NCBI RefSeq assembly: GCF_020745735.1
Contig: NW_026867444.1
Location: 248,001 to 312,000 of the forward strand
Reading direction: 5' to 3'
DNA: 64,000 bases
Origin: Hemiscyllium ocellatum
Taxonomy: Eukaryota
Shown: piece by piece, positions 1 through 63,768 of the stretch
Layout: each line of letters opens with the position of its first letter
Numbering within the stretch: the stretch's first letter is position 1
The notes under the pieces: model-generated
Database searches by the model: none
What the model was told of the DNA's origin: nothing
The model's input: the letters and a program-made list of their open reading frames with translations, nothing else
Translations under genes and position numbers: made by a program

Positions 1-325
1 GTCTCACTGAGTTCTGATCCCTGTCACTGAAATGCTTCCCCATTGATAGCCCTTCCAGCTGCCCACATTCATTCTCTAAGCAATGGTCCAAAACTGTCCC
101 TTTTCTTTCACCATCACCTTCTCAGGGGCAATTAGGGATGGGTAATAAATGCTGGCCGTGCCAGTGACACATCCCAAGAAGCAATTTTTAAAAATCCCTG
201 TCCTTTTATGGGGTTTGTTAGGTATTGGATACAAGTGTTCAAACGGATTGTTTTACCAGTGAATGTTCAGAGAGTTGAAATCAGTTTGAATGGCAGGGAT
301 TAAAATTGTTTCTCTTGCCTTTCAG

Positions 326-654
326 GCCGTGAGAACTCTCAGCCCAAGCTGACCCTGCTGCCCCCCTCCCCGGAGCAGGTCAATGCCAAGGGCACTGCCA
401 CCCTGGTGTGCCTTGCCAATCACTTCTATCCTGATGAGCTGGAGGTGCAGTGGAAGAAGGACGGTGCAGTCATTTCGGACGGGGTTCAGACCAGCAACTA
501 CCTGCGAGCTTCGGACAGCACCTACAGTGTCAGCAGCCTGCTGACCCTCTCTGGGTCTGGTTGGGAGTCCGACGCTCACTTCTCTTGTGCCCTCACCCAT
601 GTGACCCTCCCCTCTTCCCTCAGCAAGAGCATCAGGAGATCAGAATGTGTATAG
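326..654 (+). CDS. Ig light chain constant-region exon, cluster A (type I / sigma-cart-like), intact
   Basis: Acceptor tttctcttgcctttcag ends at 325. Phase-1 exon reads (S)RENSQPKLTLLPPSPEQVNAKGTATLVCLANHFYPDELEVQWKKDG...STYSVSSLLTL...FSCALTH...RSECV*. Both C1-set cysteines, the Trp and the penultimate inter-chain Cys are present. Confidence 0.97.
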
Positions 655-9155: not shown

Positions 9156-11605
9156 GTCTATTCTTTCCTGGGATGTGGGGGTCACTGGCAAAACTAGCAT
9201 TTGTTCTCCATCTCTAACTGCCCTGAAACTGAGTGGCTTGTTCGGCCTTTCAAATGGCAGGTAAGGGTCAGCCACATTGCTGGAGTCCTGGGAGAGTCAG
9301 ACTTCTACAACTGGTCGACAAGAACAAGGCCCTTTGGCCCAATGAGCCAAAGCCAGTCAAACATCCACCTCACCATTCTAATTCCATGTTCCAGCACTTG
9401 GCCTGTAGCCCTGTATGCCTTGGCATCACAGCTGCACATTGAAACATTTCAATGTTATGGGAGGGTTTCTGCCTCAACTACCCTTACAGGCAGTGAGTCC
9501 CCAGACTGCCACCACCCTCTGGGTGAAAATGTGTTTCCTTATGCTCCCTCTGAAACTTCGGCCATTTATCTTTAATCTGTACCTCTCCGATCATTGATTA
9601 TAATATAACCCCATGTCACCAAGTCTCCCTTCATTGACACATGAACAGTCCTTGACTGTAATGCCTCAGAGAGAGTCAGGCACTGGAGGCTCGGGGTCTC
9701 TGACACTCAGCCTGTTTATATCAGTGAGGATTCTCCCTGTTATATCCTCATAACGATTTGAGTTTTCCTTGTGATACCCAGTTGGGAATTTTAATGGCAC
9801 CGAATCTTCCACACACGCCCACCTATCTTGATGCTCACCCTTCTTCCCATTTTCTTCTCCCCTCTGAGTTGATTCCATTTCAGTAGAGTCTGTGATAATT
9901 CCACAGAGGATGTGTTTGAGAAACTGCCATAGGGAAGCTCCCAGCCCTTCAACAGAAGGAAGGCCAATGTTTACAGCAAGCCTGGACTGTGCCCTTGTGT
10001 ACCTTGTCTGAAGGATTCCGTCTGATCTGTCAGCCTCCCTCACAGTCTGCTAACCATCTCGGACATTGGAAGGAAATGCCCAGGATGCAGGATAACATGG
10101 CGCAAAAAAAACCTTTGGCTGAAGCTTCAGTGTTTGCCTTCGGTGTGCATTTTCACTTGCTCACTGCTCCCCTTTTACATAAAAATGTGGAAAGAACTCT
10201 TGTTGATGCAGTTTTTAAAATCATCGCAGAATAGTCAAAGCTGTGAGCATAGAGCAGTCACATTCATAGACAAGATGGTAAGGCCCCACAGACAGTAAAT
10301 GAATAACAAAACAAATGTGTGTTGGTGGCACGAGTTGAATTTTGAGCAGGGCCCCCGAGGGAATCTCCTCAGAATGGGATCTTGTCGAGCCCCCTGAGGT
10401 GGGGTTGGGGATGGTCGGGGTGTGGTGGTGATGGAGTCTCAAATGATGGTGCCAGAGACTGTGCAACTTGTAGCAGTGCACCACAGTCTCAGCCTGGAAT
10501 CTGTTCTCTCATTTCTGAGGTGGCTTTCAATCCGATGACCATTTTGACTATGGGCCAGGAGCATTGTCCATGGAGCCACGGTCAATAACAATGTAAACTG
10601 TGTAGCTCTGAAAGCCTGAGTCTGCATCTCAGCTCGGGATCATATCAGCTCATTCATCAAATCTGTTTCTGCCCCTCTGCAGGCTGACCAGGCTGCCGGT
10701 GCCTTTCCAACACTCCCACGTTTCCTCTTGTGTCACAGCTCATTCTCCTGAGGGATAGTTTGCTCGGAGTCGAAAAGTGTGGTGCTGGAAAAGCACAGCA
10801 GGTCAGGCAGTTGTGCTCAGGCCGAGGACATGATCTTGTCCCTCCTTCAGATCCTCTTCGAGAAACTCATGGCTCACCACTGCCCTCTGCAGGACAGTGA
10901 GGAAGGGCAACAAGCAAGGATGGAGATGGGGACGCGAAGCCTGAAGTGCTGCTCTCTGCAGTTTGGCGGGCACGCTTTGAGAACCGTTTGTTAGATCTTT
11001 GAGTATAATTCAATTTGTTGTTGATTCCAGTGCTCATCCGAAGGACACTCGACCTTTCAATCTGACAAACCAGGTTCACCCATGTCATGGCTCAGTTTCT
11101 GGCTAAGGCTCCAGTCTTTCAAGGAGATGAATTCAAGCCTCACCAGTTTGATCATTTGAACTGTATGCCATTTATTTTGATTTCTCCAGGGATGGGGTAG
11201 ACGTTGACGTGTCGGTTATTTGTTTCCCTTCCTGAATTGTCCTGGAGAGGGCGGTATTGAACCATGTAATTTCAGGGAAGCAGCTGACAGGTCATTTCTA
11301 CTGGAATCGACTGGAATGACTGTGGGTTTACTCATGGCTAATGGAAGGAGTCGTTACCCATAATCCTCAGTGCAGTGCACGTACTCTATAGTTACCAGAA
11401 GGAGGTTGTTTCACTGTGTCCAAACAATACAAAATCAGAAGTCACACAACACCAGGTTCTAACCCAACAGGTTCATTTGCAATCACAAGTTTCCGAAGTG
11501 CTGCTCCTTCATCAGGTGTACCCCAGTCCACCATCGGCATCCCCACATTACTGAACAGTATAAATAAACTCGGGCTCATGAGGATCTTTATAGCCAACTG
11601 CCGCC

Positions 11606-13615
11606 GTGCTCGACCTCTTGATAGCCAACTGCCGCCGTGACATCAACCGACTCAACCTGTCCACCCCTCTCACCCACTCCAACCTCTCACCCTCAGAACG
11701 TGCAGCCCTCCACTCCCTCCGCTCCAATCCCAACCTCACCATCAAACCCGCAGACAAGGGAGGCGCGGTGGTAGTTTGGCGCACTGACCTGTACACCGCT
11801 GAAGCCAAACGCCAGCTCGCGGACGCCTCCTCTTATCGCCCCCTTGACCACGACCCCACCTCCCACCACCAAACCATCATCTCCCAGACCATCCAGGACC
11901 TCATCACCTCAGGGGATCTCCCATCCACCGCCTCCAACCTCATAGTCCCACAACCCCGCACCGCCCGTTTCTACCTCCTGCCCAAAATCCACAAACCTGC
12001 CTGCCCCGGCCGACCCATTGTCTCAGCCTGCTCCTGCCCCACCGAACTCATCTCCCAATACCTCGACACGGTCCTGTCCCCTTTAGTCCAAGAACTCCCC
12101 ACCTACGTTCGGGACACCACCCACGCCCTCCACCTCCTCCAGGATTTTCGCTTCCCCGGTCCCCAACGCCTTATTTTCACTATGGACATCCAGTCCCTGT
12201 ACACCTCCATCCCCCATCACGAAGGACTCAAAGCCCTCCGCTACTTCCTTTCCCGCCGCACCAACCAGTACCCTTCCACTGACACCCTCCTTCGACTGAA
12301 TGAACTGGTCCTCACCCTGAATAACTTCTCTTTTCAATCCTCCCACTTCCTCCAAACTAAAGGAGTTGCCATGGGCACCCGCATGGGCCCCAGCTATGCC
12401 TGCATCTTCGTAGGATATGTGGAACAGTCCATCTTCCGCAACTACACTGGCACCACCCCCCACCTTTTCCTCCGCTACATCGATGACTGTATCGGCGCTG
12501 CCTCGTGCTCCCACGAGGAGGTTGAACAGTTCATCAACTTTACTAACACCTTCCATCCCGACCTGAAATTCACCTGGACTGTCTCAGACTCCTCCCTCCC
12601 CTTCCTAGACCTTTCCATTTCTATCTCGGGCGACCGACTCAACACAGACATCTATTATAAACCGACTGACTCCCACAGCTACCTGGACTACACCTCCTCC
12701 CACCCTGCCCCCTGTAAAAACGCCATCCCATATTCCCAATTCCTTCGTCTCCGCCGCATCTGCTCCCAGGAGGACCAATTCCAACACCGCACAGCCCAGA
12801 TGGCCTCCTTCTTCAAGGACCGCAGATTCCCCCCAGACGTGATCGACGATGCCCTCCACCGCATCTCCTCCACTTCCCGCTCCTCCGCCCTTGAGCCCCG
12901 CTCCTCCAACCGCCACCAAGACAGAACCCCACTGGTTCTCACCTACCACCCCACCAACCTGCGCATACAACGTATCATCCGCCGCCATTTCCGCCACCTC
13001 CAAACGGACCCCACCACCAAGGATATATTTCCCTCCCCTCCCCTATCAGCGTTCCGCAAGGACCACTCCCTTCGTGACTCCCTTGTCAGATCCACACCCC
13101 CCACCAACCCAACCTCCACCCCCGGCACCTTCCCCTGCAACCGCAGGAAATGTAAAACTTGCGCCCACACCTCCACACTCACGTCCCTCCAAGGCCCCAA
13201 GGGATCCTTCCATATCCGCCACAAGTTCACCTGTACCTCCACACACATCATCTATTGCATCCGCTGCACCCGATGTGGCCTCCTCTATATTGGTGAGACA
13301 GGCCGCTTACTTGCGGAACGCTTCAGAGAACACCTCCGGGCCGCCTGAACCAACCAACCCAATCACCCCGTGGCTCAACACTTTAACTCCCTCTCCCACT
13401 CCACCGAGGACATGCAGGTCCTTGGACTCCTCCACCGGCAGAACACAACTACACGACGGCTGGAGGAGGAGCGCCTCATCTTCCGCCTGGGAACCCTCCA
13501 ACCACAAGGTATGAATTCAGATTTCTCCAGCTTCCTCATTTCCCCTCCCCCCACCTTGTCTCAGTCGGTTCCCTCAACTCAGCACCGCCCTCCTAACCTG
13601 CAATCCTCTTCCTGA
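11606..13615 (+). pseudogene. PLE reverse transcriptase / GIY-YIG endonuclease ORF broken by one in-frame stop (13346-13348)
   Basis: Motifs KPADKG, YLLPKIHK, GRPIVS, MDIQSLYTSIP, GVAMGTRMGP, RYIDD, LPFLD, Cys linker CNRRKCKTC and IYCIRC..CGLLYIGET. ORFs 11606-13348 and 13370-13615 are in the same frame. Confidence 0.92.
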
Positions 13616-18686: not shown

Positions 18687-19212
18687 CCCCTTTCCAGATT
18701 GACATTGACAGAAAACAGACTGCAATTAACAGCCCAGACAGAGGAAGCTGCACAAATTCACAGCCACAATGGAGCTTGAGGAAAACACTTGTGGAGGTTT
18801 TCTCAATAGCACGAGAATCCTGTCCCTTCAAACAGTGACAAAACCTTAAATTGGAACTGGCGGCTGAGCAGGAAGGAGATCTGGTTTACTGAAACAGAGA
18901 CTTCTGAGGTTCACATTGTTTTGTACAGCTGACAGTCTTTAGCAACTTCAAGAGATTTTACTTGGCATCACAACTCAACTCTGTCCCAATCAAACACTCC
19001 CAGAACAGGGACAGCATGGGGTTTGACACAGTGTAAAGTTCTATCTACAGTGTCCCAATGACCTGCCATAACCCCTGAACCTCAGAAATGTCTCTGATTC
19101 GGTCCTGAGAAGGAAGAGAGTTGAAATTCAGTTCTGACAATGACATTTGTCCTGCCAGCTCAGCCCTGTTCTATTTAAAGTTGTGTCTCCTCTATGGACT
19201 GTCTTGAACACT

Positions 19213-19515
19213 CTACATGCATTCTGATCTCCTGATGCTCTTGCTGAGGGGAGAGGGGAGGGTCACGTGTGTGAGGCCAGTCAGACCCAGAGAGGGTCAG
19301 CAGGCTGCTGACACTGTAGGTGCTGTCTGAAGCTCGCAGGTAGTTGCTGGTCTGAACCCCGTCCAAAATGACTGCACCGTCCTTCTTCCACTGCACCTCC
19401 AGTTCATCGGGATAGAAGTGATTGGCAAGGCACTCCAGGGTGGCAGTGCCCTTGGCATTGACCTGCTCCGGGGAGGGAGGCAGCAGGGTCAGCTTGGGCT
19501 GAGAGTTCTCGCAGC
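19213..19515 (-). pseudogene. Ig light chain C exon of cluster B, pseudogenised
   Basis: Paralogue of 326-654 with an intact acceptor (19516-19520). A +1/-1 indel pair lies near the 5' end. A 26-nt deletion removes the second Ig cysteine and frameshifts the tail. Confidence 0.93.
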
Positions 19516-20099
19516 CTGAAAGACAAGAGAAACAATTTTAATCCCTGTTATTTGAAGGGATTTTAACTCTCTGAACATTCACTGGCAAAACAATCCATTT
19601 GAACATTTGTAGCCAATACCTAACAAAGCCCAGAAATAAACAGGTATTGTTCAAATTGCTTCTTGGATGTGAGTGTCACTGCTAGGATCAGCATTCATTG
19701 CCCATCCCTAATCACCCAGAGGGCAGTTTAGAGTCAACCACATTGCTGTGGGTCTGGAGTCACATGGTAAGGATGGCAGGTTCCTTCCCTAAAGGACATC
19801 AGGGAATCAGATGGCTTTTTCCTGACAATCAACAATTGTTTCACTATCATCATTCGACACTTAATTGTAGATTATTTTATTGAATTCACATTCCACCATC
19901 TGCTGCAGCAGGATTCTAACTCTGGCCCCCAGAACATTAATCTGGATCTCTGGATGAACAGCTCAGCAATAGTACCATTAAATCATCACCTCCTTTATCT
20001 TATTTTTAGTTGCAAGTGAAAGCAAGAAGTTTGTTTCTGAGCAGGGTGATTAGAAATAGAACAACTGAAAGACTCCCAGTTCAACCCAAAAAAGATTAG

Positions 20100-27735: not shown

Positions 27736-28182
27736 ATTGAGCAGAGTTAAAGCTGGGGGAGGTGGGAGCTCGGTGTCTCACTGTGCTGCTGCTGCTGCTG
27801 CTGCTGATGAGGTCAGTGAGATCAGAGACTGGGACAGGGAGCCAGAGCTCACATCAAAATCTGCCTGTGTCTGTCACACTGAGACTGGCAGGAGGCTGCT
27901 CACTGATTTCACTCCATGCTGCAGGAATGGGACCACAGGCTGAAAATGGACAGAGCTCCTCCACACAGTGAGTAAAACTTACTGACTTCTGTCTTGCTGC
28001 TTAAGCGGGGCAATGGAACGAAAGAAATACAGCAGGACACCCTGTTCGACACAGTGCTCCTCAATCAACCATTTCATTCACTGCAGCTCCCCACTAACAC
28101 CTTCAACAATTCAGCATTTGTGTTTTAGAAAGTGTGTTTCAGTATTGACAGGTTTAATAATAGACAATTGAGGTTTACTTGC

Positions 28183-28217
28183 TCAGTCTGAGTTTGGTTC
28201 CTTTACCAAACGTGTAC
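28183..28217 (-). pseudogene. J segment of cluster B (YTFGKGTKLRL); splice donor GC instead of GT
   Basis: FGxG motif. The donor reads a|gcaagt (28182-28177), versus a|gtaagt in cluster C. Confidence 0.92.
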
Positions 28218-28256
28218 CACAGTGAGAGCTCCCAGTGCAGAGGCTGTATAAAAACC
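28218..28256 (-). promoter_or_regulatory. 23-bp-spacer RSS of J (cluster B)
   Basis: Heptamer CACAGTG 28218-28224, 23-nt spacer, nonamer ATAAAAACC 28248-28256 (one mismatch to ACAAAAACC). Confidence 0.92.
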
Positions 28257-28700
28257 TCTGCTCTCTGCTTCCCCCTGTCACTCTCAACCTCTCCCTGTCT
28301 CTCTCTGTCTCTGTCTATTCTTGGTCAATCTCATTCACTCCCTACCCCTCTCTGTCTCTCCCTCATTCATGTGTCTTTCTCTCTCTGTCTTCCGGGGTTG
28401 TGTCCAGCTACTCTCGGGGGTTTGTGAAATTGAGTTTTCATTGTTAAATTTTGCAGCTGTTCTTCACATGTGGCCATGGAGTGTAAGAGGGAAACTTGAG
28501 GCCTTCAGTGAGCGGTGGACACCACAGGGACTGGAGTGTGTAGTGGACAGTGACAAACCCAGCATGGGGTAATTTGTTCAATTTACTTTATATATAACTA
28601 TGGATGTGTCAGTGCAGGAGATGGGACTGTTTGTCCATTATTATACATTTCATATAACTGTTGGATGTGTCAGTACAGAAGGTGGTGTTGTGCGTGTTGA

Positions 28701-28728
28701 GGTTTTTGTATGGCACTGTATCACTGTA
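28701..28728 (-). promoter_or_regulatory. 12-bp-spacer RSS of V (cluster B), heptamer mutated
   Basis: Heptamer TACAGTG (28728-28722), 12-nt spacer, consensus nonamer ACAAAAACC (28709-28701). Confidence 0.9.
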
Positions 28729-29024
28729 AAGTCTGCTGCTATACTGCTGACAATAATATTCAGCGACATCTTCATTCTGAACGTTGCTGATTGTCAGGGT
28801 GAAACTGGTCCCTGATCCACTGCCGGTGAATCGATCGGAGACTCCTGTGAATCGATTTGTTCCATCATAGATAAGGAGAGAGGGTTTCTGAACTTCTCAC
28901 TGCTGGTACCAAGCAAGGTAGCTGCTAATGCTTTGACTGGTCATCCAGGTGGTGGTTGCAGTCTGGCCCAGTCCCATTAACAGCACCCGGGGAGACTCGG
29001 ACATGATGATGTCCCCACTGATAA
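28729..29024 (-). pseudogene. V exon of cluster B, pseudogenised
   Basis: [48 protein letters not shown]...[35 protein letters not shown]. The first Cys is replaced by Trp, and there is a TGA at 28899-28897 where cluster C has CGA. Confidence 0.94.
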
Positions 29025-29210
29025 CTGAGGGGTCAGAGAGAAACACAGTGAAGTCAGAACTGTCACAGAAAGAGCCTGTCAAATGAGAGATTGTTGGAGA
29101 CACAGAGCATTCTTCTGGTTTCAGCATTTTCCCTTCAATCACAAGTCAGTGGAATTGGAGTGAAATGGGGAGCAGCTAAAGATTCAAGGTGGAAGGAGAG
29201 AGATTTGTAC

Positions 29211-29259
29211 CTGCAACACAGAATGCCAGGGGCCAAATTAACTGGCTGTGTGAAATCAT
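29211..29259 (-). CDS. Leader exon of cluster B (MISHSQLIWPLAFCVA), intact but part of a pseudogene
   Basis: ATG at 29259, donor g|gtacaa. The 186-nt intron is the same length as in cluster C. Confidence 0.9.
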
Positions 29260-29319
29260 GATGTGTGCTCCTGTCCCTGTGCCTGATTCCTGATAAACTC
29301 TCCCTTCACTGGGCTCTGC

Positions 29320-29416
29320 TTTATAAAGCTGCAGCCTGTGAGAGTCTGACTGGATGTTCCTCAGTATGTAAATGGCATCAGGCAGAGAGAGCCACGTCAG
29401 CCCCTCACATTTCCTC
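29320..29416 (-). promoter_or_regulatory. V promoter of cluster B
   Basis: TATAAA 29325-29320, octamer-like ATTTACAT 29373-29366, TGACGT 29399-29394, GAGGAAAT 29416-29409. Same layout in cluster C. Confidence 0.75.
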
Positions 29417-31299
29417 TTCTCTCTCTCCCTCTCTCGCTCTCTCTCTCTCTGAGAATCATTGATGTGAACAACATTGAATGAGGCCATTTGGCCCATTGTG
29501 TCCGTGTGAGTAAACAAAGATCTAATGACACTAATCCCATTCTCCAGCTCTTGGCCCATCACCCTGGAGGCTACAGCAACACAAGGGAATATCTAAACAC
29601 TGCTCCAATGTCACGAGAGTTTGTGACTCAACCAGCCTTTCAGGCAGTGAGTTCCAGACTCCCACCACCCTCTGGGTGAAAACATTTCTCCTCAATTCTC
29701 CTCTCACTCCAATTTGACTGGGCCTGGACTCACTCAAGTTTAGAAGGATGAGAGGGAATCTGATTGAGATGTATAAAATTCTAACAGGGCTGGGCAGAGA
29801 GGAGGTTTCCCCTGGTTGGGAAGTCTGGATTCAGGGGACCCAGTCTCAGGGGGATACAGGGTAGACCATTTTGGACTGAGATGAGGAAACATTTCTTCAC
29901 TCAAAGGGTAGGACAACTGTGGAACCCAAGGAACTGAATAAATTCAAGAAAAAGAGAGAGATAATTGTTTTGCATTTTAACAGCATGAAGGGAATGGGGA
30001 GAAAGCAGGAATATGGTTTTGAGAGAGAGGATCAGCCATGATCATAATGAATGACAGAGCAGACTCAAAGGGCCAAAAGGCCTACTCCAGTTCCGAGCTT
30101 CTATGTGTCCATGTCTGTGTTACCTGGGACACAGGTTATTGAGTCCTTTACTGATATATAAAGTGCCTTCTTACCCACGCTATCACTGCCCCAAATAATC
30201 TTATCCCCCTCTATCATGTCCCCTCTCAGCCTTCACTGCTCCAAGGAAACAATCCCAACCTTTCCAAGATTTCCCCACAGCTGACCCTCCATCCCAGGCA
30301 GCATCTTGGTAAATCTCTGCACCCTCTCAAGTACAATCACATCCTTCTCAGAATGTGGTGACCAGGACCTATCCACCTCTCTCTCTCTCTGTCTCACATC
30401 TGCCACTTCTTTCTCTCTATCCCTCTCTCTCCTACCATTAATCTCTTTCATGTTCTCGCTCTCTCTCACTCTATCTCATAGCCACTCTCCCCAATTCACT
30501 CATGCTTTCTCACTCCATCTCATAATCTTTATTTTTACATCTCTCACTGTCTCCATAACTCCTTCCCTCTCTCGCTTCAATTTAGATCCTCTGTTATCTC
30601 TCCTCTCCATACCTCCCTCTGTCTCTCTCCCTCCCTCTCTGTATTCCCAAATCTACAATCGTACTCCCTCCCTCTCTGTCATTCTGTTTTTAATCATACT
30701 CATGTCTCTCACTTTCTCTCTCTCTCTCTCTCTGGCGCGCATACACACACACACACACACACACACGTACAGACACTCACCCGTTGTCTCTGACTCACTT
30801 CTCTCTCTTTCTCACAGTGTCCCAGGTTGTGGCAGTTGAATTCAGGATGGATCTCCCTCTCTCTGCCCCACTCATGGATGTTAACCCTTGACCCCAGAAG
30901 CATGTTTTCTCCTGGAGTAAGGCCCCATTTTCCACATTGACCTGGATTTGGCCTCTCTCAGAAAGATGGCTAGATTCTTGTCAAATGAAGGGCAGTTCTG
31001 TGCTGTTGGCCTGTTCTCACTGGGGACTGGTTTGGACACAAAGCTCATTCCATGAAGGCCCAGCAGAGAGAGGAGATCCTCAGGCCATCAGTGTGAGCTG
31101 GAGGGAAAGCACAAGATCTGACCCCCTGATCCAGCATGTCCATTCACAACATTTTCCAATCCCTTCCCCTCTCCTACCCCTCTCCTTCCCTTTCCATGAT
31201 CAGTCTCTGAGTCAGGGTGTTTTACTGGGATACGGGTTGAACCATTATACAGTTACAACAGAAAGGAACTGAACCCCACACTCACCTTGGAGTCCATGA

Positions 31300-32975
31300 T
31301 GCACTGGACTCTCCTACAGAGTCCAGTAAACATGACCTCCTTCCTGCAGGAGCCTCCACTAGAGACCAGTAAACATTGGTCTCCTTCTGACTGGACTCTC
31401 CAAAGGAGACCAGTAAACATGTATCTCTTTCGGACTGGATCGTCTAGTAAAGAACAGTAAACATGGACCTCCTTCCTGCTGGAACCTCCAACACAGACCA
31501 GTAACCATGGATCTCCTTCTGACTGGATCCTCCAAGACAGATCAGTAAATATGGGCCTCCTAATTACTGGAACTTCCAATAGAGATGAGTCGATGGTTGA
31601 GTTTTTGAAGAAGGAAGCAAGAAGATAGGTAAAGATAGAGTAGTACACTCTGTCTACATGGAGTTAATACAAGGTTCCCTATGGTAGACTGCTCAGTAAG
31701 ATTATATCACATAGGATCCAGGGACAGCTCACCAATTGGATATGAAATTGTCCTGATGATAGGAGGCTGAGGCTGGTGAGAGAAGGTTGTTCTTCAGACT
31801 GGAGGCCAGTGACCAACTGTCTGTCACAAGAATCGATCATGGATCCACTGTTGTTCATATTTTATGTGAACAATTTGGATGAGAAAATAGCAGGAATGGT
31901 CAGTAAGTTTGTGGCTGATGTTAAAATTGTTGGCATAGTGGACAGGGAAGAAGGTTATCCAAGAGTGCAATGTCATCTTGATCAACTGGGCCAGTGGATC
32001 AACAAATCCAGATGGAAATTTTGATAAATGGAAGGAGTTGCATTTTGGGAAGACAAATCAGGGCAGAAATTACACAATTAATGGTAGAGCCATGGGGAGT
32101 GTTGTTGAACAGAGAGTCTGAGGGGTACAGGTACATAGTTCCTTGGAAGTGGGGTCACAGGTAGACAGGGTGGTGAAGAAGGTATTTGGCACGCCATCTT
32201 CACTGGTCAAAGCAGGGAGTATAGGAGCTGGGACATCATGTTACAGCTGTACAAGGCATTGGGAAGGCCACATTTGGACACAGTACATTTCTGCTCACCC
32301 TGCTATAGGAAGGAAGTTATGACAGTGGTTTGAATAAAAGAAAGATTAACAGGGATGTTATCAAGATTGGAGGATTTGAATTACAAGATGAGGATGAATA
32401 GGCCAAGATGTTTTTCCAGGGAATGCAGGAGATTGAGGGGTGACCTTATAGAGGTTGTGGAATTAGGAGGGTCATAGATAAGGTGAATAGTCAAAGTCTC
32501 TTCCCCAGGGTAGGAGAGTCCAGTACTAGAAGGAGTAGGTTTACGTTGAGAGGGGAAAGAATTAGTAGGAAACTGAGGGGCAACATTTTCACACAGAGGT
32601 TAGTGTGTATGTGTAATGAGCTGACAGAAGAATTCGTAGAGGTGAGTACAATTACTATATTTCAAGGACATTTTTACAGGAACATGGATAGGAAAGATTA
32701 GAGAGAATTGGGCCAAACACATGCAAATGGGACTAGTTCAGTTTTGGATACTTGGTCGGCATGGATGAGTTGAGCTGAACGGCCTGATCCCATGCTGTAA
32801 ACCTCTATGACTCTTTGGTGATATATACATGGGACACTTTCCCATAGAACCAGTAAACATGGACCTCTTTCCACTGGAACCTCCAATAGACACCAATAAA
32901 CAGGGACCTCCTTCCCATTGGATGCTCCAGAAGAGACTAGTAAACATGGTCCTCCTTCCCTCAGGACTGGCCAGC
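31300..32975. repeat. 44-bp minisatellite (about 6.5 + 3 units) split by a CR1 fragment at ~31590-32815
   Basis: The anchor cagtaaac (or a variant) recurs at 31324, 31367, 31411, 31455, 31499, 31543 and at 32851, 32894, 32938. Confidence 0.85.
31590..32815 (+). mobile_element. CR1 RT / 3' fragment
   Basis: YVNNLDEKIAGMVSKFVADVKIVG, SRKLRGNIFTQRLV. Confidence 0.82.
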
Positions 32976-34952
32976 ACCTGAGCTACAACTCCGACATCCT
33001 CTCCATCATGTAGGTCTCTTATTTCAATCTCAACAACATTGTCTCTGCGTTACTTCGGCCCCTTGACCACAGAAACCCTAATTCCTGCTCGTCCTGCCTC
33101 CTAAATCTATGATTCCAATGTCCTGTCCCAGCTTCCTAAAGCCATATTCCATAAACTCCAACTTGTCTGATATGGAGTGCGCCTTTCCCTGTCTTATCCA
33201 TCTGTCATTCCAGAATGACCCCTGACCTCACTGCTAGCCAATTGCCTCCATGGCCTCCCCCCTCCCTCCATCTGTGTCCTGCTGCAGACTCACATTCCCT
33301 CCCTCCCCCTTTCATCTTCTGTCTCTGGTCTCCTGCCCATTGCTACTTGCTCCAACCCACCATTGACAGCAGAGCATTCAGACCCCTACAGCATGCTCTC
33401 TGACCTCCTGCCCTTGATCCCTCACCCTCTCAATGGTTGTGCTATTGAGTATACTGTTCAATCCCATCACTTTGGTTCACTGTTCCCTTGCCATTGATTT
33501 GCTGAATTCTTCCTCATCAGTAAATCTAGTCTGGCCTGTTCCTTGAGTTGGTTCAAGAGAGTTTCCCTTGAGAAAACATTCTTCTGTAAACTGGGTTGTC
33601 TGTTTCTCCCAGTCTTTGTGTAAAGGTGAGTCTAAGTGTGTGTAAGCTCTAAAACAGCACAGACAGAAGTCACTGGGCTGATTGTGACTGTTAGTCAAAT
33701 GAGTCCAATGAGTTCCCATTTCCCCAGCCCTTCCTGTATAACTGCAATTATTTCCTTTTCAGCTATTTCTCCAAATGCCCTTTTGAAAGTTGCTGTTGAA
33801 TCCACTTCCACTCACCTTGCAGACAGTCACCATGAACTCGCTGGATAAAAAATGTTCCTATCTTCTCTCTTGTGCTTTAGACTCTTTCTGAAATGTGTGC
33901 CCTTGGGTTACTGACCCTCCTGCCTGGAGAAACAATTTGTCCTGTATTTACTGCATCCAAACTCTCTAATTGTGAATCCCTCATTGAGTGAGACCTATTT
34001 CCAGCACAGGGGGAGAACATTCAGCCTGTCAGGTAAATGCTGTCATTTCATGGAGCAATCCATTCAGTCCCACCCCCTCCCCTACTCGACCCCCAGGGCC
34101 TTGCAGGTTTATTTCCATCAAGAGCCCATCCAATCTGCCATTGCAATCACTGAGTGTCTTCACCTGTCTCACCTGAATGGGCACTAATTTCCAAGACTTT
34201 GCCAATTTCTGCTAAAATCAAAGTTCTTTCTGACATTCCATATCTCTTGCCCAACAGAATGTAAGATAATCTCAAAGGGAAGACAGGATTTTGTCTCCAC
34301 ACGGACTGTGCGGTGGTCACTCTTACTGATACTGTCATGGACAGATACACCAACAGCAGGCAGGTTTGGTGAGGGTGATAGTGAGTATGTTTTTCCCTCT
34401 TGTTGGTTGCCTCACCACCTGTCCCAGGTCCAGTCGAGCATCTGAATCAGGTGGACTTGACCAGCTTGCTCAGTAGTGATGCTTCTGAGCAGCTCTTGAT
34501 GGTGGGCTTTGAATTCCCTTACTCAGGGTATATCCGGCATCATTCCCTCCCTCAGTGCTCCCACCAAGTGTTGTTCAACATGGAGGAGGACTGACTGCTC
34601 AGTTGAGGTTGGAGCGGAGGGCGGTGCTATGTGGTAATCAGCAGGAGGTTTCCTTCCCCATGTTTGACCTGCTGTCATGAGGCTTCATGGGTTCCATAGT
34701 TAATGGTGAGGACTCCCAGGGCAACTCCTTTCTGACTGTACACACCACTGTGTTGCCTCCCCTGCTTGGTCTATCCTGCCAGTTATAAACTGAATGAGGG
34801 ATCAATTCTGTGCAGGTTTCACAGCTTGGAGACAGAGCTGCTGCTGGATTCTGTTTCTGATCTCCGAGTGCAGGCGTGTGTGTTTGTGAGAGAGTGACTG
34901 ACACCTTTTCCAAAACTGTGCTGTTTCTGCAAAAAATAAATCCTAGAACCAG

Positions 34953-35201
34953 CCTCCTGTGCTGTCAGATTCCAGGGAGTGAAGATGGTTCACAGTTTTC
35001 TCCCGTCTCAGTAACAAACACCCAGCTGCTCCGAGCTCCTTCTTTCACTTCCTCTTTTTTGTGAAGTTTCAACCTTGCGATCTGACAGTCTTTGCAGTTA
35101 TTTTTTACACTGGGGCTTTCTGCTGTGGTCAGAATCTCTAATAATAAGTGTCCGATCAGTGACAATCACAGCAGCTAAGAGCAGTCAGGACTGAGGAGCC
35201 A
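34953..35201 (-). promoter_or_regulatory. Candidate upstream enhancer of cluster B (paralogue of 57311-57558)
   Basis: About 9 differences in ~250 nt versus the cluster C copy. EICE 35043-35054, CAGCTG 35023-35028, kB-like 35112-35121, RUNX 35124-35129, MEF2-like 35138-35147. Confidence 0.55.
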
Positions 35202-35864
35202 AGCTCATTGTGAAACATATTGGGAAGATCAAAGTCATCCTCTTCAGATCCTGGTATAAACTCCATCCCTCTCCCTGAGCACTATCTGCTGCTCAACCAG
35301 ACTCTTTACAAACTGGGTCTCATGTTTGAGAATGATCTAAGCCCCATATCTTTCATATCACAAAGATCAGCCACTGAAAATCTCAGCCATGTTTATGGGG
35401 CTCCAAACATGACCATTCCAATGGCTGATGCACATCACAGCCACTGCCCTCCGTATCCTTCAGCTCATCCAAAATTCTGCAGCCCGTATCCAAACTTGCA
35501 CCAAGTCCCGTTCCCACAACCCCCTGCACCCCGTGCCTAGATTGGCTCCTGGTCGAGCAACACCTCGATTTTCAAATTCTCATCCTTGTTTTCAAATCCC
35601 TCTCTGCCCTCCACTCTCCCTATCTCTGTAACCTCCTCCAAGCTGCCTCACTCCGTGTGGTCAGCAATCTTGGATAATTGGCTCTCTATTCCTTCATCCA
35701 AGTCATTGAGAAATATTGTGAAATACTGAGGCCCCTGCACAAATCCCTGGGGACACCACTATTCACATCTTGTTCATTAGAGAGCACGCACATTATCCCT
35801 CTTCTCTGTCTCCTACCTCCAAACTAATTCCTCACCAAAGACAAATACTTTTCTGTCACTGTCT

Positions 35865-49640: not shown

Positions 49641-52600
49641 TGAAGAGAAGGATGTGGAAGCATTTTTCATGTTGTTTCAGAAGATAGCAACACAAGTGAG
49701 GTGGGAAAAACAGGTTGGACCTTGCCCATGCAAAATGAACTTGAGAAGCACAAGAGGTTTCTACATCCCTGTCAGAGGAATGTTCTCGGGATCATGAGGA
49801 AGTGAAATCAGCTATTCTAAGCACATATGAGTTGGCCCCAGAAACATACAGACAGATGTTTCAGAATGGACACAAACAGCCTGGACAAACCTCTACTGAG
49901 TTTAAGAGAGTTTAACAAAATAATATTGACAGGTGGATAAGAGCATTAACAGCTGAGAATACTTACAATGCTCTCAGAGAAGTTATCTTTTGAGAAGAAT
50001 TTAAAGCTTCCTTCCCTTCTAGAGTTAGAAATTAATGTCGAAGACCAAAGGGGAACGACAGTAAGACAAACAGCTACAATGGCTAATGATGATAGACTTT
50101 GTTAAAGCCAAAACCCTGCAGATGCTGGAATCCAAAGTAGACAAACAGGAGGCGGGAAGAGCACAACAAGCCAAGCAGCATCAGGTGGTGGAGAAGTCAC
50201 CTGATGGGAGACCGATCCAGAAACTCTTTTTCCCATCAGGCCCAGAAATGGGAGAAACATAAAAATTGGGAGAGTATGAGGAAGGCAGGTAGCCAGGGCA
50301 GAAAATGGACAGGAGGGAACAGCCCAAGAACTTCTCCTCAGATTAAAAAGGAAATTGCTGAGGGTGGAAGTGATGATCAGAAGCTGAAATGTTTGTCTTG
50401 GAATAAGGTGGGCCATGTGTGTTTGGAATGTTGAAAATTGTGAGATAAACCCATGGGATTTATAGGAGTTAGTAAAATTGAGTCAGAGAGGGGAACACAA
50501 ACTGACAATCCCACGGAGCAGGTTGTAGCTGTCACTATAACAAAAAGGCCGGAGGTGAATTCTGTCATTAGTAAAGGAGGTTGTCAGGTAGATGAGAGGT
50601 GGACAGGACTTTTATCAAAAGGAATGGTGACTCCTTTCTCTTCAGCTAAACCCAGAATCAAACTAAGAGATACAGGGGCAATACAATCACTTTTACTGGA
50701 GAAAGAATTGATTATCCCTCCAGAGAGCTCAATGGGAGCTAATGTATTAACCAATGGGATTGGTGGAGAATATATTCCACTTCCATTGTGTACAGTACAA
50801 CTGGAATGTGATTTGTAATCAGGAGAAGTAATTGTCGGTTTGGGAAAACATTCCCTGTTGAGGGAGTCGATTTCCTTCTGGGGAATGGTTTGTCAGGACT
50901 AAAGGCAGTAGCTTCCCCGATAATTACAGAATGTCCAAAGGAGGGCCAAGAAACAGAACAATGACAGGAACAGGTTCCTGGTCTCTCTCCTTCGTGTGAG
51001 GTAACCAGGGCAATGGTTAAACAAAATCCATCAATAAGGGTTGATGTGACAAGACAGCAAGTGAAAGGATCGCTGAAACTTTCCGAAAGGGTGAAGATAA
51101 TCCAGGTGGAGTGGTTGGTATGATGTCACTAATTACAGCAGATCCAAAAAGCAGATCCTGAATGAAATAAATGAGCACAGTCAGCTCATAATGAGGTCAA
51201 GGCTGAAGGAGTTTCAGAGTGCTATTGTGTTCAGAATGGAGCGCTGATGAGGAAGTGGAGACCCCCTCATAGACCCCCAGAAGAATGGTCGGTTAGACAT
51301 TGGCTAGTGGTCCCACCCAGCTATCAGAGGGAGATAGTACACGGGGCACATGAGACTCCCATGGCAGGTCACATGGGGATTTGGAAAACACAGGCATCCA
51401 GAAACAGATATTTTACTGAGCTACAATTGGATAAAGATGTGGTGCAGTTTTATAAAACGTGTCTTACTTGTCAAGTTATAGGTAAACATCAATACAAAAC
51501 CAGCATCCTTAATTCCTTTCCCAGTTTTTGAGGAACCATCCCGTCATGTACAGGTTTGTCAAGTAGTGAGTATAATAGAGGAGGGGATCAGAAAAAGCTT
51601 GAGATCAAAAAAGACCTGGACACTTCCCAAAGTAAACTTCCTGTTATTAGAGGAACAAATTCAGAGATATTTGAGACTTCAGACACTGTATTTTTGTATC
51701 TGGAGAAAGATCAACAGGTAGATTTAGTGAGGCTGCTCAGACAATACAAAGATGTTTGTATGAGGAGTCGTTGAGGACTTTGGTTCTGTCCTTGATGGAG
51801 CTTAGAAAGATGAGAGGGAATGTAATTGAAACTTACAGAATACAGGGTGGCCTGGATAGAGTGGACATGGAGGGGATGTTTCTAATAATAGGAGAGTTGG
51901 AGACCTGAGGGAACAGCCTCAGAGTGAAGAGATGATCTTTTGAACTGAGTTGAGAAGGACTTTCTTCAGCCAGAGTGTCATTAATCTGTGGAACTGCAGA
52001 GGGCCTTGGAGACCAATTCGTTGAGTGTATTTAAGAAAGAGATAGATTGGCTCTTGATTGGTCAAGGGATCAAGATTTACAGGGAAAAGGGAAGAGATTG
52101 GGGCTGAGAAACATTATCAACTGTAAATGACCAGACATGATGGGCCAAATGGCCCAATTCTGCTCCTTTATCTTGTGGACTTGTATTGGTACACTTAGAT
52201 CTATCACATGAATAAAATATAACATGAATTTGGTAATTCAGACAAAATAAAACAAAAACCAACCGAAACTGGCAATGGAACAAAGGGCTTCCATGTTGGA
52301 GAATCAGCTGATTGAACCATATCAGAGGAATTGGAGTTCTCCTGTAGTATTGGCTCCTGAACCAAACTGTTCAATTTAATTCTATGTAGACTTGAGGAAT
52401 CTGAGTCTCATCATAAAACCAGATTCATTCCCTATTCCCAGCTGAGAAGATTGTATAGAGAGGGTTTGTAGCATATCATTTTTGTATAAAATTGATTTGT
52501 TAAAAGGATGTTTAGATGAACTCACTGATAACTAGAACTAAGCGAGTTTCTGTATTTATCACACCTAATGGATTATACCCAATGGCAAGTTTTGCTATGT

Positions 52601-55745: not shown

Positions 55746-57310
55746 ACCCCCCAAGTCTGTTATAATTAAAAGCTGGCTCGAGGTGCCTTTACCTTAAAAA
55801 CCAGGCAGGCAACACACCATGTGGGGCTCTCAATCCTGCTCACAAAGGATGCTATCAGTTCCCTTCATTATCAAGACCCCTCTTTTCTTTGTGCTCCCCC
55901 AGTCTGAGTGGCCTCCTGGACCATGGTGCAGTGGTTTCCTTCGTTCATTCATAGGAAATGGACATCTCTGGCCATCACTTGATGTGGTCACTCTGAGCTG
56001 CAATGGGCTCCACCAGCTTCCCCATCGTACAATTACTACACATCGCCTGGCCCTGTATGTGGAAATTATTTGAGGAGTTTTTAATTTATATTTTAAAATT
56101 TGCTGCTGGTCTTTAGTTTTTAATCTGTAAAATACTTCTGTCCAGGAGACAGAGAAGGTGCCAGCACAGGAGGAGGCTGTTCAGCCCCTCGTGTCAGTGC
56201 TAGCTGTTTACGAGCCTCAATTACAATGAGCATCTCCATTGAATGTCTGTTGTCAGGAAGTGATTGAGTCTGTTTTTAGAGACAGAATAACGGACAAATA
56301 TGAACTGGTCCGAGAGAATCAGCATGGATTGACAAAGGTTCAGACATCTTGAACTAACCGGGTTACACTTTGTTAGGAGCTCACTAGTGTGGGATATAAG
56401 GGAATGTCGATGGCTATTGTCTATAGGAAATTCCAAAAGATATTTAAAAATGTTCCACAAAAGAAACATTGATTCAGATCTTACACTCCACAACCATCTG
56501 ATGAAGGAGCAGTGCTCCAAACGCTGATGCTTCCAAACAAACCTGTTGCATTAGAACCTGGTGTTGTGTGATTTTTAACATTTACACGACAGTCCAACAC
56601 CGGCATCTCCAAATCATGGAATTGGATGGAATTTGAGAAATGCATTTACCTTGGGTCAGGAATGGGTCTGTCTAGGAGACAGAGAGGAAGGATAATGTGC
56701 GTGTGTTCCAATGAGACAGATGTGAGTAGTGGTATTCCCAGGGATCTGTGCTGGGACCTCAGCTTTTCAAGATATTTCTCAATGACTTGGATGAAGAAAC
56801 AGAGAGCCATATATCCAAGATTATTGATCACACTGAGTGAGGCAGCTTGGAGGAGGTCACAGAGATAGGGAGGGTGGAAGAACAGGGAGCAGATTGAGAA
56901 CAAGGATGAGAATTTAAAAATCGAGGTGTTGCTGGACCAGGAGCTTATGTCAGTCAGTGAGGATTGTGGTGGTTATGGTGGGGTGGGGAGGCGTGGGCAG
57001 GGGTATGGGGTGGACTTGGTGTGAGTTTGAACACAGACAGCAGAGTTTGGGATGAGCTGATGTTTACGGAAGTCAGTGGCTGTGATGTGGGCCTGGATAA
57101 CATTGGAATGGTCTCAAAAACATGGTTGAGATTTTCAGTGGCTGATAATTGTGATGTGGAGGATTTGGGCCTCAAATCAGCCCCAAAGATGAGGCCAAAG
57201 TTGTAAAGAGTCTGGTTGAGCTGCAGACAGTGCTCAGGGAGAGGGATGGAGCTTGTACCGGGAGCTGAAGAGGATGGCTTTGATCTTCCCAATGTGTTTC
57301 CCAGTGAGCC

Positions 57311-57558
57311 TGGCTCCTCAGTCCTGACTGCTCTTAGCTGCTGTGATTGTCACTGATTGGACACTTATTATTAGAGATTCTGACCACAGCAGAAAGCCCC
57401 AGTGTAACAAATAACTGCAAAGACTGTCAGATCACAAGGTTGAAACTTCACCAAGAGAGGAAGTGAAAGAAGGAGCTCGGAGCAGCTGGATGTTTGTTAC
57501 TGAGACGGGAGAAAACTGTCAACCATCTGCACTCCCTGGAATCTGACAGCACAGGAGG
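57311..57558 (+). promoter_or_regulatory. Candidate upstream enhancer of cluster C (paralogue of 34953-35201)
   Basis: GAGGAAGTGAAA 57457-57468, CAGCTG 57483-57488, ACCACA 57383-57388, agaaagcccc 57391-57400, TTATTATTAG 57365-57374. Confidence 0.55.
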
Positions 57559-57829
57559 AGGCCATTCAGCCCATCATGCCTTTGAATGACTCAGTGAGTC
57601 CCACTGCTTCCCCCCTCTCTCCCTGTAACCCAGCAAATCTTTCCTTTACAGCTCAATCTCCAATTCCCTCCTATAGACCTCATGTCCACAGAGTGAGACT
57701 GCCCTGAACCTGGGCTTCAAATTGGCATCTCATTCATTCATTGGGAAACAAACTGCCTGGGCTGGGAAATGGAGTTCAGGACCCTGAACATTCCCTCTCC
57801 CCTCCTGAGGGACACTTCATTTGGTTTTG

Positions 57830-59900: not shown

Positions 59901-62539
59901 CTTTTTTGAAACATTGTCATAATTGATACAACTGAGAGCCTTGCTCGGCCATTTCAGAGGGCACTAGAGAGTCAACCACATTGCTAGAGGACAGTGCCGT
60001 GTACCCCGGCAGTACATTCCGGCCTCCCCACTTCCCCATTCTGTATATGGAAGGCGGAAGCCTGCCAGCTGGATATTCACCGCAGGAGCTATCACAGCCC
60101 GTGTGCAATTCTGTCCCCACATTAAATCCACACAAATCCTGAGTTCACATAACACCTTCAATGTCCAAGCATTCCAAGAATGTTCACAAAGTTGCAGTAA
60201 GAGGGATGGGGGAGAGGGTGGAGGAACATAAGAACTGGAGCAGGAGCAGGCAATTCAGCCCCTCGAGCCCACTCCACCATTTAATACAATCATGGCTGAT
60301 CCCATCTCAGACTCAACTCCACTTTCCTGCTCACTCTCCATCATCCTTTAACCCATTACCCATTAAATATCTGTCCATCTCCTCCTTGGTGTGAGACAGG
60401 GAAGGGACCACTCCATTCAGAAAAGACTGACCATGGAAGGGGAAGGAGAGGGGAAGGGATTGGAACATGTTGTGAATGGACAGGATGGGTCAGTGGGTCA
60501 GAGCCTGTCCTGTCTCCTCCAACTCACGCTGATGATCTGAGGATCTCCTCTCTCTGCTAGGCCTTCATGGAATGAGGTTTGTGTCCAAATCAGTCCCCAG
60601 TGAGAATAGGCCAACAGCACAGAACAGCACAGAACTGCCCTTCATTTGACCAGAATCTGTCCATCTTCCTGAGAGAGGCCAAACCCTGGTCAACGTGGAA
60701 ATAGGGCCTTACTCCAGGAGAAAACAGGGGTCAAGGGTTAACATCCATTAGTGGGACAGAGCAGAGGGAGATTTATCCTGCATTCAACTGTCACCACCCA
60801 GGACACTGTCAGAAAGAGAGAGCAGTGAGACAGAGAGAGATGGAGGGAAAAATAGTGTGAGAGTGAGAGTGAGACTAGCATCTGATATGGTGTAAGATAT
60901 GTGAGGGGACCAAGAGAGAGGTAGAGGGAGGTAGAAATGGTGAGGTTGAGGGATAGAGAGAGAAACAAGATGTGAGACAGTGTGACTGAGAGGGATGGAG
61001 AGAGACAAAGAGACAAGGAGAGAGAGAGTGAGAGACAGGATGGGTGTGAGACTAAGTATGAAGAGAGTTGAGAGGGAGGGTAAGATTGAGTGTGAGGGAG
61101 AGAGATGAGTATGGGTAGATTTATAATGACAGAGAGAGAGGGAGAGAAACTGTAAATTGGGAGGTAGAGAGGGAAGGAGAGAGAAAGAGGGAGGAATAGA
61201 GAGTGACAGGTAACAATTGGAGGCTTTTAATTGAAGTGAGAGAGGGAGCGAGTAACAGAGACAGAGAGAGATGGAGAAACAGATGATAAGATGGAGTGAG
61301 AAAGCATCAGTGAGTTGGAGAGAGTGGCTATGAGACAGAGTGTGTGTGTGAGAGAGAGAGAGGAAGAGAACATGAAAGAGATTAACATTGGGAGAGAGAG
61401 ATAGAGGTAGAGAGAAAGAAATGGCAGATGTGAGTCAGAGAGAGAGAGGGACAGGTCGTGGTCACCACACTCTGGGAAGAATGTGATTGTACCTGAGAGG
61501 GTACAGGGAGATTTCCCAGGATGCTGCCTGAATGTGAGCTTTGAGCAGTGAAGGCTTAAAAGGGACCTGATAGAGAGGATAGGATTATTCAGGACAGTGA
61601 TAGGGTGGGTAGGATGGCACTTTTTACATGAGTAAAGGACTTCATAACCTGGTACAGAGATTGAAGGTAACACAGACATGGACACGTAGAAACTTGGAGC
61701 AGCAGTAGGCCATTCGGCCCTTTGAGTCTGCTCTGTCATTCAGTATGATCATGGCTGTATCAATTTTTGAATTTCATCATTTCTTCGAGGGTCAGTGTGG
61801 GCTTGTCGGGCCAAATGGCCTGTTTCCACACTGTAGGCATTCTATGATCTATGGCTGATCCTCTCTCTCAAAGCCATATTCCTGCCTTCTCCCCATTCTC
61901 TTCAAGCTGTTAAAATGCAAAACAATTATCTCTCTCTTTTTTCTTGAATATATTCAGTTTCTTATCCTCCACAGCCTTCAGTGGTAGAGAATTCCACAGG
62001 TTGACCACCCTCTGAGTGAAGAAATGTTTCCTCATCTCAGTCCTAAATGGTCTACCCTGTATCCCCCTGAGCCTGTGTCCCCTGGTTCCAGACTCCCCAA
62101 CCAGGGGAAACCTCCTCCCTGCCCAGCCCTGTTACAATTTTATATGTTTCAATCAGATCCCCTCTCATCGTTCTGAACACGAGTGAGTCCATGGCCAGGC
62201 GAGTTGGAGAATTGGAGAGTGAGAGGAGAGTTGAGAAGAAATGTTTTCACCCAGAGGGTGGTGGGAGTCTGGAACTCACTGCCTGAAAGGCTGGTTGAGT
62301 CACAAACTCTCGTGACATTGGAGCAGTGTTTAGATATTCCCTTGTGTTGCTGTAACCCCAGGGTAATGGGCCAAGAGCTGGAGGATGGGATTAGTGTCAT
62401 CAGATCTTTGTTTACCAGCACAGACACAATGGGCCAAATGGCCTCATTCAGTGCTGTTCACATCAATGACTCTGAGACAAAGAGAGTGAGATCGAGAGAG
62501 AGAGAGAGGTACAGTGGCGAGAGAGAGAGAGAGAGAGAA

Positions 62540-62636
62540 GAGGAAGTGTGAGGGGCTGACGTGGCTCTCTCTGCCTGATGCCATTTACATACTGAGGAAC
62601 ACCCAGTCAGACTCTCACAGGCTGCAGCTTTATAAA
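62540..62636 (+). promoter_or_regulatory. V promoter of cluster C
   Basis: GAGGAAGT 62540-62547, TGACGT 62557-62562, ATTTACAT 62583-62590, TATAAA 62631-62636, ATG at 62697. Confidence 0.78.
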
Positions 62637-62696
62637 GCAGAGCCCAGTGAAGGGAGAGTTTATCAGGAACCAGGCACAGGGACAGGAGCACACACC

Positions 62697-62745
62697 ATGA
62701 TTTCACACATCCAGCTGATCTGGCCCCTGGCATTCTGTGTCGCAG
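62697..62745 (+). CDS. Leader exon of cluster C (MISHIQLIWPLAFCVA)
   Basis: accATG, donor g|gtacaa, 186-nt intron to the acceptor ending at 62931. Confidence 0.92.
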
Positions 62746-62931
62746 GTACAAATCTCTCTCCTTCCACCTTGAATCTTTAGCTGCTCTCCATTTCACTCCA
62801 ATTCCACTGACTTGTGATTGAAGGGAAAATGCTGAAACCAGAGGAATGCTCAGTGTCTCCAACAATCTCTCATTTGACCGGCTCTTTCTGTGACAGTTCT
62901 GACTTCACTGTGTTTCTCTCTGACCCCTCAG

Positions 62932-63232
62932 GTATCAATGGGGACATCATCATGACCCAGTCTCCCCCGGTGCTGTCAGGGGGACAGGGCCAGACCGCAA
63001 CCATCACCTGTACGGCCAGTCAGTGAATCTGTTAGCAAGTGGGTTGCTGGTACCAGCAGCGAGAAGGTCAGAAACCCTCTCTCCTGATCTATGCTGCAAC
63101 AACTCGATTCACAGGAGTCTCCGATCGATTCACCGGCAGTGGATCAGGGACCAGTTTCACCCTGACAATCAGCAACGTTCAGAATGAGGATGTCGCTGAC
63201 TATTACTGTCAGCAGGTTACAGCAACCCTCGA
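62932..63232 (+). pseudogene. V exon of cluster C, with two in-frame stops in CDR1 as assembled
   Basis: [97 protein letters not shown] 63024-63026 and TAG 63033-63035. Confidence 0.92.
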
Positions 63233-63260
63233 CACAGTGACACAGAGCTGTACAAAAACC
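63233..63260 (+). promoter_or_regulatory. 12-bp-spacer RSS of V (cluster C), consensus
   Basis: CACAGTG 63233-63239, 12 nt, ACAAAAACC 63252-63260. Confidence 0.97.
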
Positions 63261-63735: not shown

Positions 63736-63768
63736 GTACGTTCGGTAAAGGAACCAAGCTCAGACTGA
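63736..63768 (+). CDS. J segment of cluster C (TFGKGTKLRL), intact
   Basis: FGxG motif. The donor a|gtaagt gives phase 1, compatible with the C exon phase (Ser codon a+gc). Confidence 0.95.
   Translation, partial: VRSVKEPSSD

Follow-up and report, generated by a model that had tools for sequence, protein, structure and literature searches.

The enhancers of the tetrapod Ig-lambda loci lie downstream of C, and those of the mammalian Ig-kappa loci lie 3' of C-kappa. Teleost Ig enhancers, such as the catfish IgH Emu3' and that of Atlantic cod IgL, serve fishes with repeated V-J-C light-chain clusters; they are located within or downstream of the clusters and contain mainly octamer and E-box motifs. 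Sharks possess dozens of separate V-J-C clusters, few of which are expressed per B cell. To our knowledge, no enhancer has so far been described for the antibody genes of cartilaginous fishes, and we found no such description in the literature on Ig regulation in sharks and fishes, including reviews, with subscription journals largely outside the scope of this survey. Here we characterize a block of DNA that, in contrast to the tetrapod Ig-lambda enhancers, lies 5-6 kb upstream of V, and that is a candidate enhancer of the shark kappa-type light-chain cluster. The E-box, NF-kB, MEF2 and PU.1-IRF4 sites are reported to be conserved across the chicken, mouse and human Ig-lambda enhancers, and these four sites to be required for the hypermutation-targeting activity of the chicken element (Buerstedde et al., PMC3972084).

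The DNA analyzed here is a 64,000-nt stretch of the Hemiscyllium ocellatum genome (contig NW_026867444.1, positions 248,001 to 312,000), referred to as the window. It contains parts of three kappa-type light-chain clusters (DIIMTQSP..., FGKGTKLRLSK), designated A, B and C, with the following elements.

304-651, plus strand: intact C exon of cluster A, the only part of this cluster present
19178-19537, minus strand: C exon of cluster B, frameshifted
ATG at 29259, V exon at 29022-28735, J near 28210, minus strand: V gene of cluster B
62583-62590, plus strand: octamer-like ATTTACAT in the promoter of cluster C
62583-63260, plus strand: V gene of cluster C, with the leader at 62697-62747, the ATG at 62697 and the V exon from about 62928
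63233-63260: recombination signal sequence (RSS) of cluster C with a 12-nt spacer, heptamer at 63233-63239 and nonamer at 63252-63260
near 63741: J of cluster C, the C exon of which lies beyond the end of the window

Clusters B and C are arranged head to head, and clusters A and B tail to tail. The C-exon regions of A and B share 87% identity over 1.1 kb (131-1211 versus 19712-18641). An inverted segmental duplication is common to B and C (27951-35815 versus 64000-56673); it is collinear, broken by non-shared insertions, and its shared pieces are 79-87% identical. The top protein matches of the light chains in the window were light chains of Chiloscyllium punctatum and H. ocellatum, to which the C region of cluster A showed 93.5-97.2% identity. 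Assemblies of Salmonella enterica and Aeromonas veronii also include shark-like light-chain fragments (P0144, 80%; P0158, 72% identical to a catshark protein), on contigs measuring 299 and 507 nt, which most likely represent contamination of those bacterial assemblies.

Cluster B is dead: in its V gene, a stop follows WYQQ and Cys23 is replaced by Trp, and a frameshift disrupts the C exon after ...LSGSDW. Retrotransposon fragments pack the 8.7-kb J-C intron of this cluster. The V gene of cluster C is also defective, with two in-frame stops in CDR1 (63016-63035). Between clusters A and B, we observed a 584-codon stop-free frame (11594-13345, plus strand) with the look of a retroelement protein, a diverged inverted copy of which is located at 17.4-18.5 kb.

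An earlier note on this DNA, made from the letters alone, had singled out a block of about 250 nt, present in two copies, as a candidate B-cell enhancer standing upstream of each V gene. We found that global alignment of the reverse complement of 34953-35201 with 57311-57558 gave 8 mismatches and 1 gap column in 249 columns (96.4% identity), in agreement with the near-identity that it had reported. The adjoining DNA is indeed less well kept (35202-35508 versus 57012-57310, 83.1% identity excluding gaps, 16 gap columns), and the contrast between core and adjoining flank in the B-C comparison was significant (Fisher p = 1e-7). The two copies are oriented alike with respect to their own genes, 34953 lying 5.7 kb from the ATG of B at 29259 (minus strand) and 57558 lying 5.1 kb from the ATG of C at 62697, and the five strings quoted in the note (GAGGAAGTGAAA, CAGCTG, TGTGGT, GGGGCTTTCT and CTAATAATAA) are present in both, all as described. 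The extent of the block required correction. Its core is real, but the kept segment amounts to about 340-350 nt, reaching distally to 35307 in B and 57205 in C. At the proximal limit, in turn, the final 12-14 nt (57546-57558) belong to the beginning of a dispersed repeat with at least 5 occurrences in the window.

A third copy was reached via kappa V proteins, on L001, the only C. punctatum contig that extended far enough upstream. The three copies are as follows.

34956-35307, minus strand: copy 1, upstream of B; 94.3% identical to 57205-57555 over 352 nt
57205-57545, plus strand: copy 2, upstream of C; 95.7% identical to 3268-3615 of L001
3268-3615 of L001 (BEZZ01005289.1, C. punctatum contig): copy 3, 6.4 kb upstream of a kappa V gene, in matching orientation

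The copy in L001, the single contig on which the comparison of the block beyond the window is based, was 95.7% identical to the copy of cluster C and 93.4% identical to that of cluster B, as compared with 79-83% in the flanks. The block is a non-coding element present once per cluster, in fixed orientation, in three clusters. A sensitive search of the window and the C. punctatum contigs L001-L003 (about 95 kb) revealed no further copies, and a metagenome scan gave no match to an invariant 33-mer of the block. The distance from the block to V is 5.1, 5.7 and 6.4 kb in C, B and L001, respectively, the spacing being altered by cluster-specific transposon insertions; the DNA from the block to V differs in all three clusters, with gaps of 2.9, 3.8 and 4.8 kb between shared anchors. 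In L001, transposon insertions are located directly at both edges of the block, and none inside it. The kappa V gene of L001 (protein P0005; about 10290-10300) has Tyr in place of Cys23, so that the V genes beside the readable block copies are defective in three of three cases (B, C and L001). Their few disabling changes suggest that these V genes were inactivated recently. Nearer to the genes, 320-460 nt upstream of the ATG, a stretch within a CR1-tail-like repeat (...RVVGVWNSLPERLVESQTLVTLEQCLD...) is 97-100% identical between C (62235-62383) and B (29.6-29.8 kb); it is present in L003, and the insertion is absent from L001 and L002.

To compare the rates of change, B, C and L001 were aligned three ways. 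The core (57311-57553) varied at 15 of 243 sites, as compared with 54 of 187 sites in the adjoining flank (Fisher p = 2e-10). The branch lengths were as follows.

Flank, 57010-57200: B 0.096, C 0.091, L001 0.070
Core, 57311-57553: B 0.021, C 0.012, L001 0.029

Substitution in the core was slowed 3-8 fold relative to the flank in all three lineages. In every lineage, the rate lay well under that of the adjoining homologous DNA (0.012-0.029 versus 0.07-0.10), which is the pattern taken as a sign of constraint. CpG decay of the flanks was considered as a cause of this contrast and rejected, since block and flanks had equally low ratios of observed to expected CpG. All three pairs (B-C, C-L001 and B-L001) share the distal boundary near 57200, and the B-C pair has no insertion there. 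The proximal end lies at 57545-57558 in every pair, where it coincides with a break of homology in B and with an insertion in L001. The distal 105 nt of the block behave differently among the lineages, B changing at a near neutral rate and C and L001 being almost identical. Cluster B, the most decayed, also carries the most changes in the block, including the loss of a CCAAT box. Only 1 of the 15 substitutions falls in the motifs described below, which make up about 21% of sites, an avoidance that is not significant with only 15 substitutions.

Gene-conversion tracts likewise appear as short, sharply bounded segments of raised identity between paralogues in older duplicated DNA. As the earlier note had allowed, the identity of the block might reflect concerted evolution only, that is, recent gene conversion or unequal exchange among the many kappa clusters, with tracts bounded by heterologous insertions and with motifs that are fortuitous. 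We consider this explanation unlikely, although several observations speak for it. High-identity islands occur elsewhere too, namely in the 62235-62383 stretch and in the promoter, leader, leader intron of about 180 nt and FR1 (62535-62950), the latter segments with 95-100% identity across five clusters (B, C, L001, L002 and L003). These segments are more alike among the five clusters than FR2 and FR3, and in the case of the leader intron this points to either constraint on the intron or homogenization; since the promoter, leader and intron are as well kept as the block, homogenization seems to act in this family and may extend across the whole of it. Moreover, the high-identity segment of L001 is flanked on both sides by insertions, the distal 105 nt are mosaic in that the divergence depth of B is unlike that of C and L001, and the adjacent V genes are all defective, so that there is no obvious reason to expect ongoing selection on their enhancer. 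On the other hand, shortening all three branches would take at least two separate events with matching boundaries, the B-C pair shows the distal boundary near 57200 without any insertion there, and the neighboring homologous flanks were left unconverted. Conversion also leaves unexplained why the block overlaps a cluster of motifs found nowhere else in about 95 kb. Unlike a plain conversion tract, the block shows raised identity in all three pairs and coincides with this motif cluster.

We also examined the repeats that surround the block, the two nearest being the following.

35419-35700, plus strand: old fragment resembling a retrotransposon tail, on the distal side of copy 1; it corresponds to about 56880-57110, minus strand, in cluster C
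57546-57817, plus strand: dispersed repeat abutting the proximal end of copy 2; 83% identical between C and L001

The translation of the tail fragment matches the LQxxQNxAAR...LHWLPV...FKxL...PxYL motif of the database proteins P0179-P0183, in which this motif is tandemly repeated (E = 4.8e-10, also found by tblastn). The fragment is only 74-86% identical between clusters, and farther out a CR1-like reverse-transcriptase fragment follows on the opposite strand. The first 17 nt of the dispersed repeat occur 5 times in the window versus 0.01 expected, and the homology of this family starts about 12 nt before 57559. The block and the tail fragment are contiguous and on one strand, and the block might conceivably be the 5' continuation of the tail fragment, within a fish LINE family; putative remnants of reverse-transcriptase-like motifs occur along the block in matching order.

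The earlier note had left room for the block being an unrecognized repeat. In this case, for instance as the 5' continuation of the retrotransposon fragment, its identity would be that of a repeat family. The contiguity with the tail-like fragment on the same strand, the second dispersed repeat abutting the opposite side, and the putative reverse-transcriptase-like remnants would fit this explanation. However, no reverse-transcriptase signal was found in the block with Pfam, with tblastn using the CR1-like reverse transcriptases of the window, or in the protein atlas, and the DNA examined contained no other members of this LINE family. The block has only three copies in about 95 kb, all upstream of a kappa V gene, whereas the neighboring repeats recur there; within the DNA covered, the block is not a dispersed repeat. 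The three copies are collinear in the segmental duplication, and therefore derive from a single ancestral sequence and not from separate insertions. A transposon origin would, in addition, leave unexplained why the block has been preserved 3-8 times better than the remainder of the fragment. We therefore regard a dispersed repeat as very unlikely.

Transcribed elements were assessed in the same way. A sub-threshold match to mir-337 and a 66-codon frame in copy 1 might suggest that the block encodes a small RNA or an exon of an unannotated protein-coding gene. The mir-337 match was the only one obtained with Rfam, at 18 bits as compared with a gathering score of 80 (E = 0.93). The fold z-scores were positive (+0.72 and +0.49), no better than those of shuffled sequences, and none of the 110 predicted pairs was compensatory, the covariation term being unfavorable. 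A 1-nt indel interrupts the 66-codon frame in both C and L001, Pfam gave no match in the block, and a protein search with the overlapping open frame was empty. An RNA gene or an exon is accordingly most improbable.

The block contains a compact set of motifs, located as follows.

57457-57468, plus strand (copy 1, 35043-35054, minus strand): ETS-IRF composite GAGGAAGTGAAA, a perfect match to GGAANNGAAA; invariant in three copies
57483-57488 (copy 1, 35023-35028): E-box CAGCTG, 14 nt past the composite; invariant, with unchanged spacing, in three copies
57365-57374 (copy 1, 35138-35147): perfect MEF2 site YTAWWWWTAR (CTAATAATAA on the opposite strand); invariant in three copies
57382-57388, minus strand (copy 1, 35124-35130): RUNX site TGTGGTC; invariant in three copies
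57391-57400, minus strand (copy 1, 35112-35121): kB-like GGGGCTTTCT; invariant in three copies
57356-57360, minus strand: CCAAT box (ATTGG on the plus strand, CCAATCAG on the other), 3 nt from the MEF2 site; kept in C and L001

In the sense of the gene, the order is CCAAT, MEF2, RUNX and kB-like, followed after 56 nt by the composite and after a further 14 nt by CAGCTG. The sole difference in motif spacing among the three copies is a 1-nt indel upstream of the composite. The CCAAT box is destroyed in cluster B by a change at the equivalent of 57358. No NF-kB consensus GGGRNWYYCC is present in the block, as GGGGCTTTCT ends in T and not in C. Two of the motifs are rare even when taken singly: GGAANNGAAA matches 8 times in the 64-kb window and YTAWWWWTAR 7 times, 2 of the matches being in the blocks in each case. 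The pairing of the composite with a MEF2 site within 150 nt was found in the block only (window and L001-L003). We then scored the window and the three contigs with a panel of six motif types (EICE, i.e., the composite, CASSTG, MEF2, NF-kB, RUNX and octamer), and the only 350-nt windows reaching four types in about 95 kb were the three blocks, with the composite, MEF2, E-box CAGCTG and RUNX; the panel was picked after the motif list was already known, and this result is supportive and not a clean test. A third exact GAGGAAGTGAAA occurs at 49796-49807, in the repeat-rich DNA between B and C, with no other motifs nearby and no duplicated partner.

We compared this arrangement with the described enhancers. 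Like the tetrapod Ig-lambda enhancers (chicken cIgLambdaE, human and mouse), the block is a compact module of E-box, kB, MEF2 and PU.1-IRF4 sites, with a partly different order: the composite and the E-box stand on the other side of the kB/MEF2 group, and a RUNX site is added. Read on the antisense strand, the shark order of kB-like, (RUNX), MEF2 and CCAATCAG resembles by eye the NF-kB, MEF2 and CCAATCAG of chicken, with a gap from MEF2 to CCAATCAG of 3 nt in shark and about 10 nt in chicken Ig-lambda (PMC3972084 Figure S2). The finch sequences in the same figure contain no CCAAT, and the likeness between shark and chicken, which was judged by eye from motif order and includes a shark kB-like site that is off consensus, may be due to chance. 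The combination of a PU.1-IRF4 composite with E-boxes is also found in the mammalian Ig-kappa 3' and distal enhancers, and the shark gene is itself kappa-like, with DIIMTQSP... and an RSS with a 12-nt spacer. Among the sites listed in the legend to PMC3972084 Figure S5, no MEF2 site is given for the mammalian kappa enhancers. The mammalian kappa locus, as a translocon, has one enhancer set, whereas in the shark there is one copy per V-J-C cluster. The CASSTG, EICE and MEF2 sites that mark a light-chain enhancer of lambda or kappa-3' type are all present in the block. Its position is different, since light-chain enhancers of this type lie in the J-C intron or downstream of C and the block precedes the V leader by 5.1-6.4 kb in the three clusters.

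Because its motif set matches those of the chicken, mouse and human Ig-lambda enhancers, and because it is conserved well above the surrounding DNA, the block is a credible candidate for a B-cell switch. We are inclined to favor, by a small measure, the hypothesis that it is a per-cluster B-lineage enhancer of the kappa-type cluster, located 5-6 kb upstream of the V promoter. The starting point of this hypothesis is what we observed in three clusters, i.e., the conservation, motif content, copy number and position of the block; judging from its sequence, the block would also bind the corresponding factors and possess enhancer activity with B-cell specificity. The upstream enhancer proposed in the earlier note is thus strengthened by a conserved island that occurs once per cluster in fixed orientation, by the third copy and by a motif set unique in about 95 kb, but it is held back by the defective adjacent V genes, the off-consensus kB-like site, and a V promoter, leader and leader intron that are equally well kept.

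In the mechanism that we envisage, an ETS factor of PU.1/SpiB type together with IRF4/8 would occupy the composite GAGGAAGTGAAA, and an E protein would bind CAGCTG, 14 nt away. MEF2, RUNX, NF-Y (on CCAAT) and perhaps a Rel factor would occupy the tight motif group 60-100 nt off. The bound factors may jointly open the chromatin and loop to the octamer-like V promoter, so that every cluster would have a separate switch controlling germline transcription, V-J joining and expression.

The block could instead be a functional non-coding element of another kind, such as a germline or antisense promoter, a boundary or insulator, or a hypermutation-targeting element, which we regard as quite unlikely. 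The conservation evidence for such an element is identical to that for an enhancer, two CCAAT boxes and ETS sites could suit a promoter, and Ig enhancers with such a motif set target hypermutation in chicken and human (PMC3972084). Against an insulator, no CTCF-like consensus was recognized in the block by eye; more generally, these functions and enhancer activity look alike at the level of sequence. Returning to the enhancer hypothesis, we also considered a more far-reaching form of it, in which the block would correspond, in cartilaginous fishes, to the Ig-lambda enhancer of tetrapods. Its E-box, kB, MEF2 and PU.1-IRF4 grammar would then go back to the common ancestor of jawed vertebrates and be copied with every cluster, where it would, as in birds and mammals, drive transcription and V-J accessibility and also target somatic hypermutation, with a part of it possibly recruited from an old retrotransposon fragment. 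This form is conceivable, if rather unlikely.

In shark heavy-chain genes, limiting promoter-enhancer complexes have been proposed to account for exclusion (PMC2435157). For the light-chain clusters, the block provides a defined 340-nt candidate with mutable sites and makes the choice among clusters testable. If the enhancer hypothesis is true, the motif set of light-chain enhancers would be older than the split between cartilaginous and bony vertebrates.
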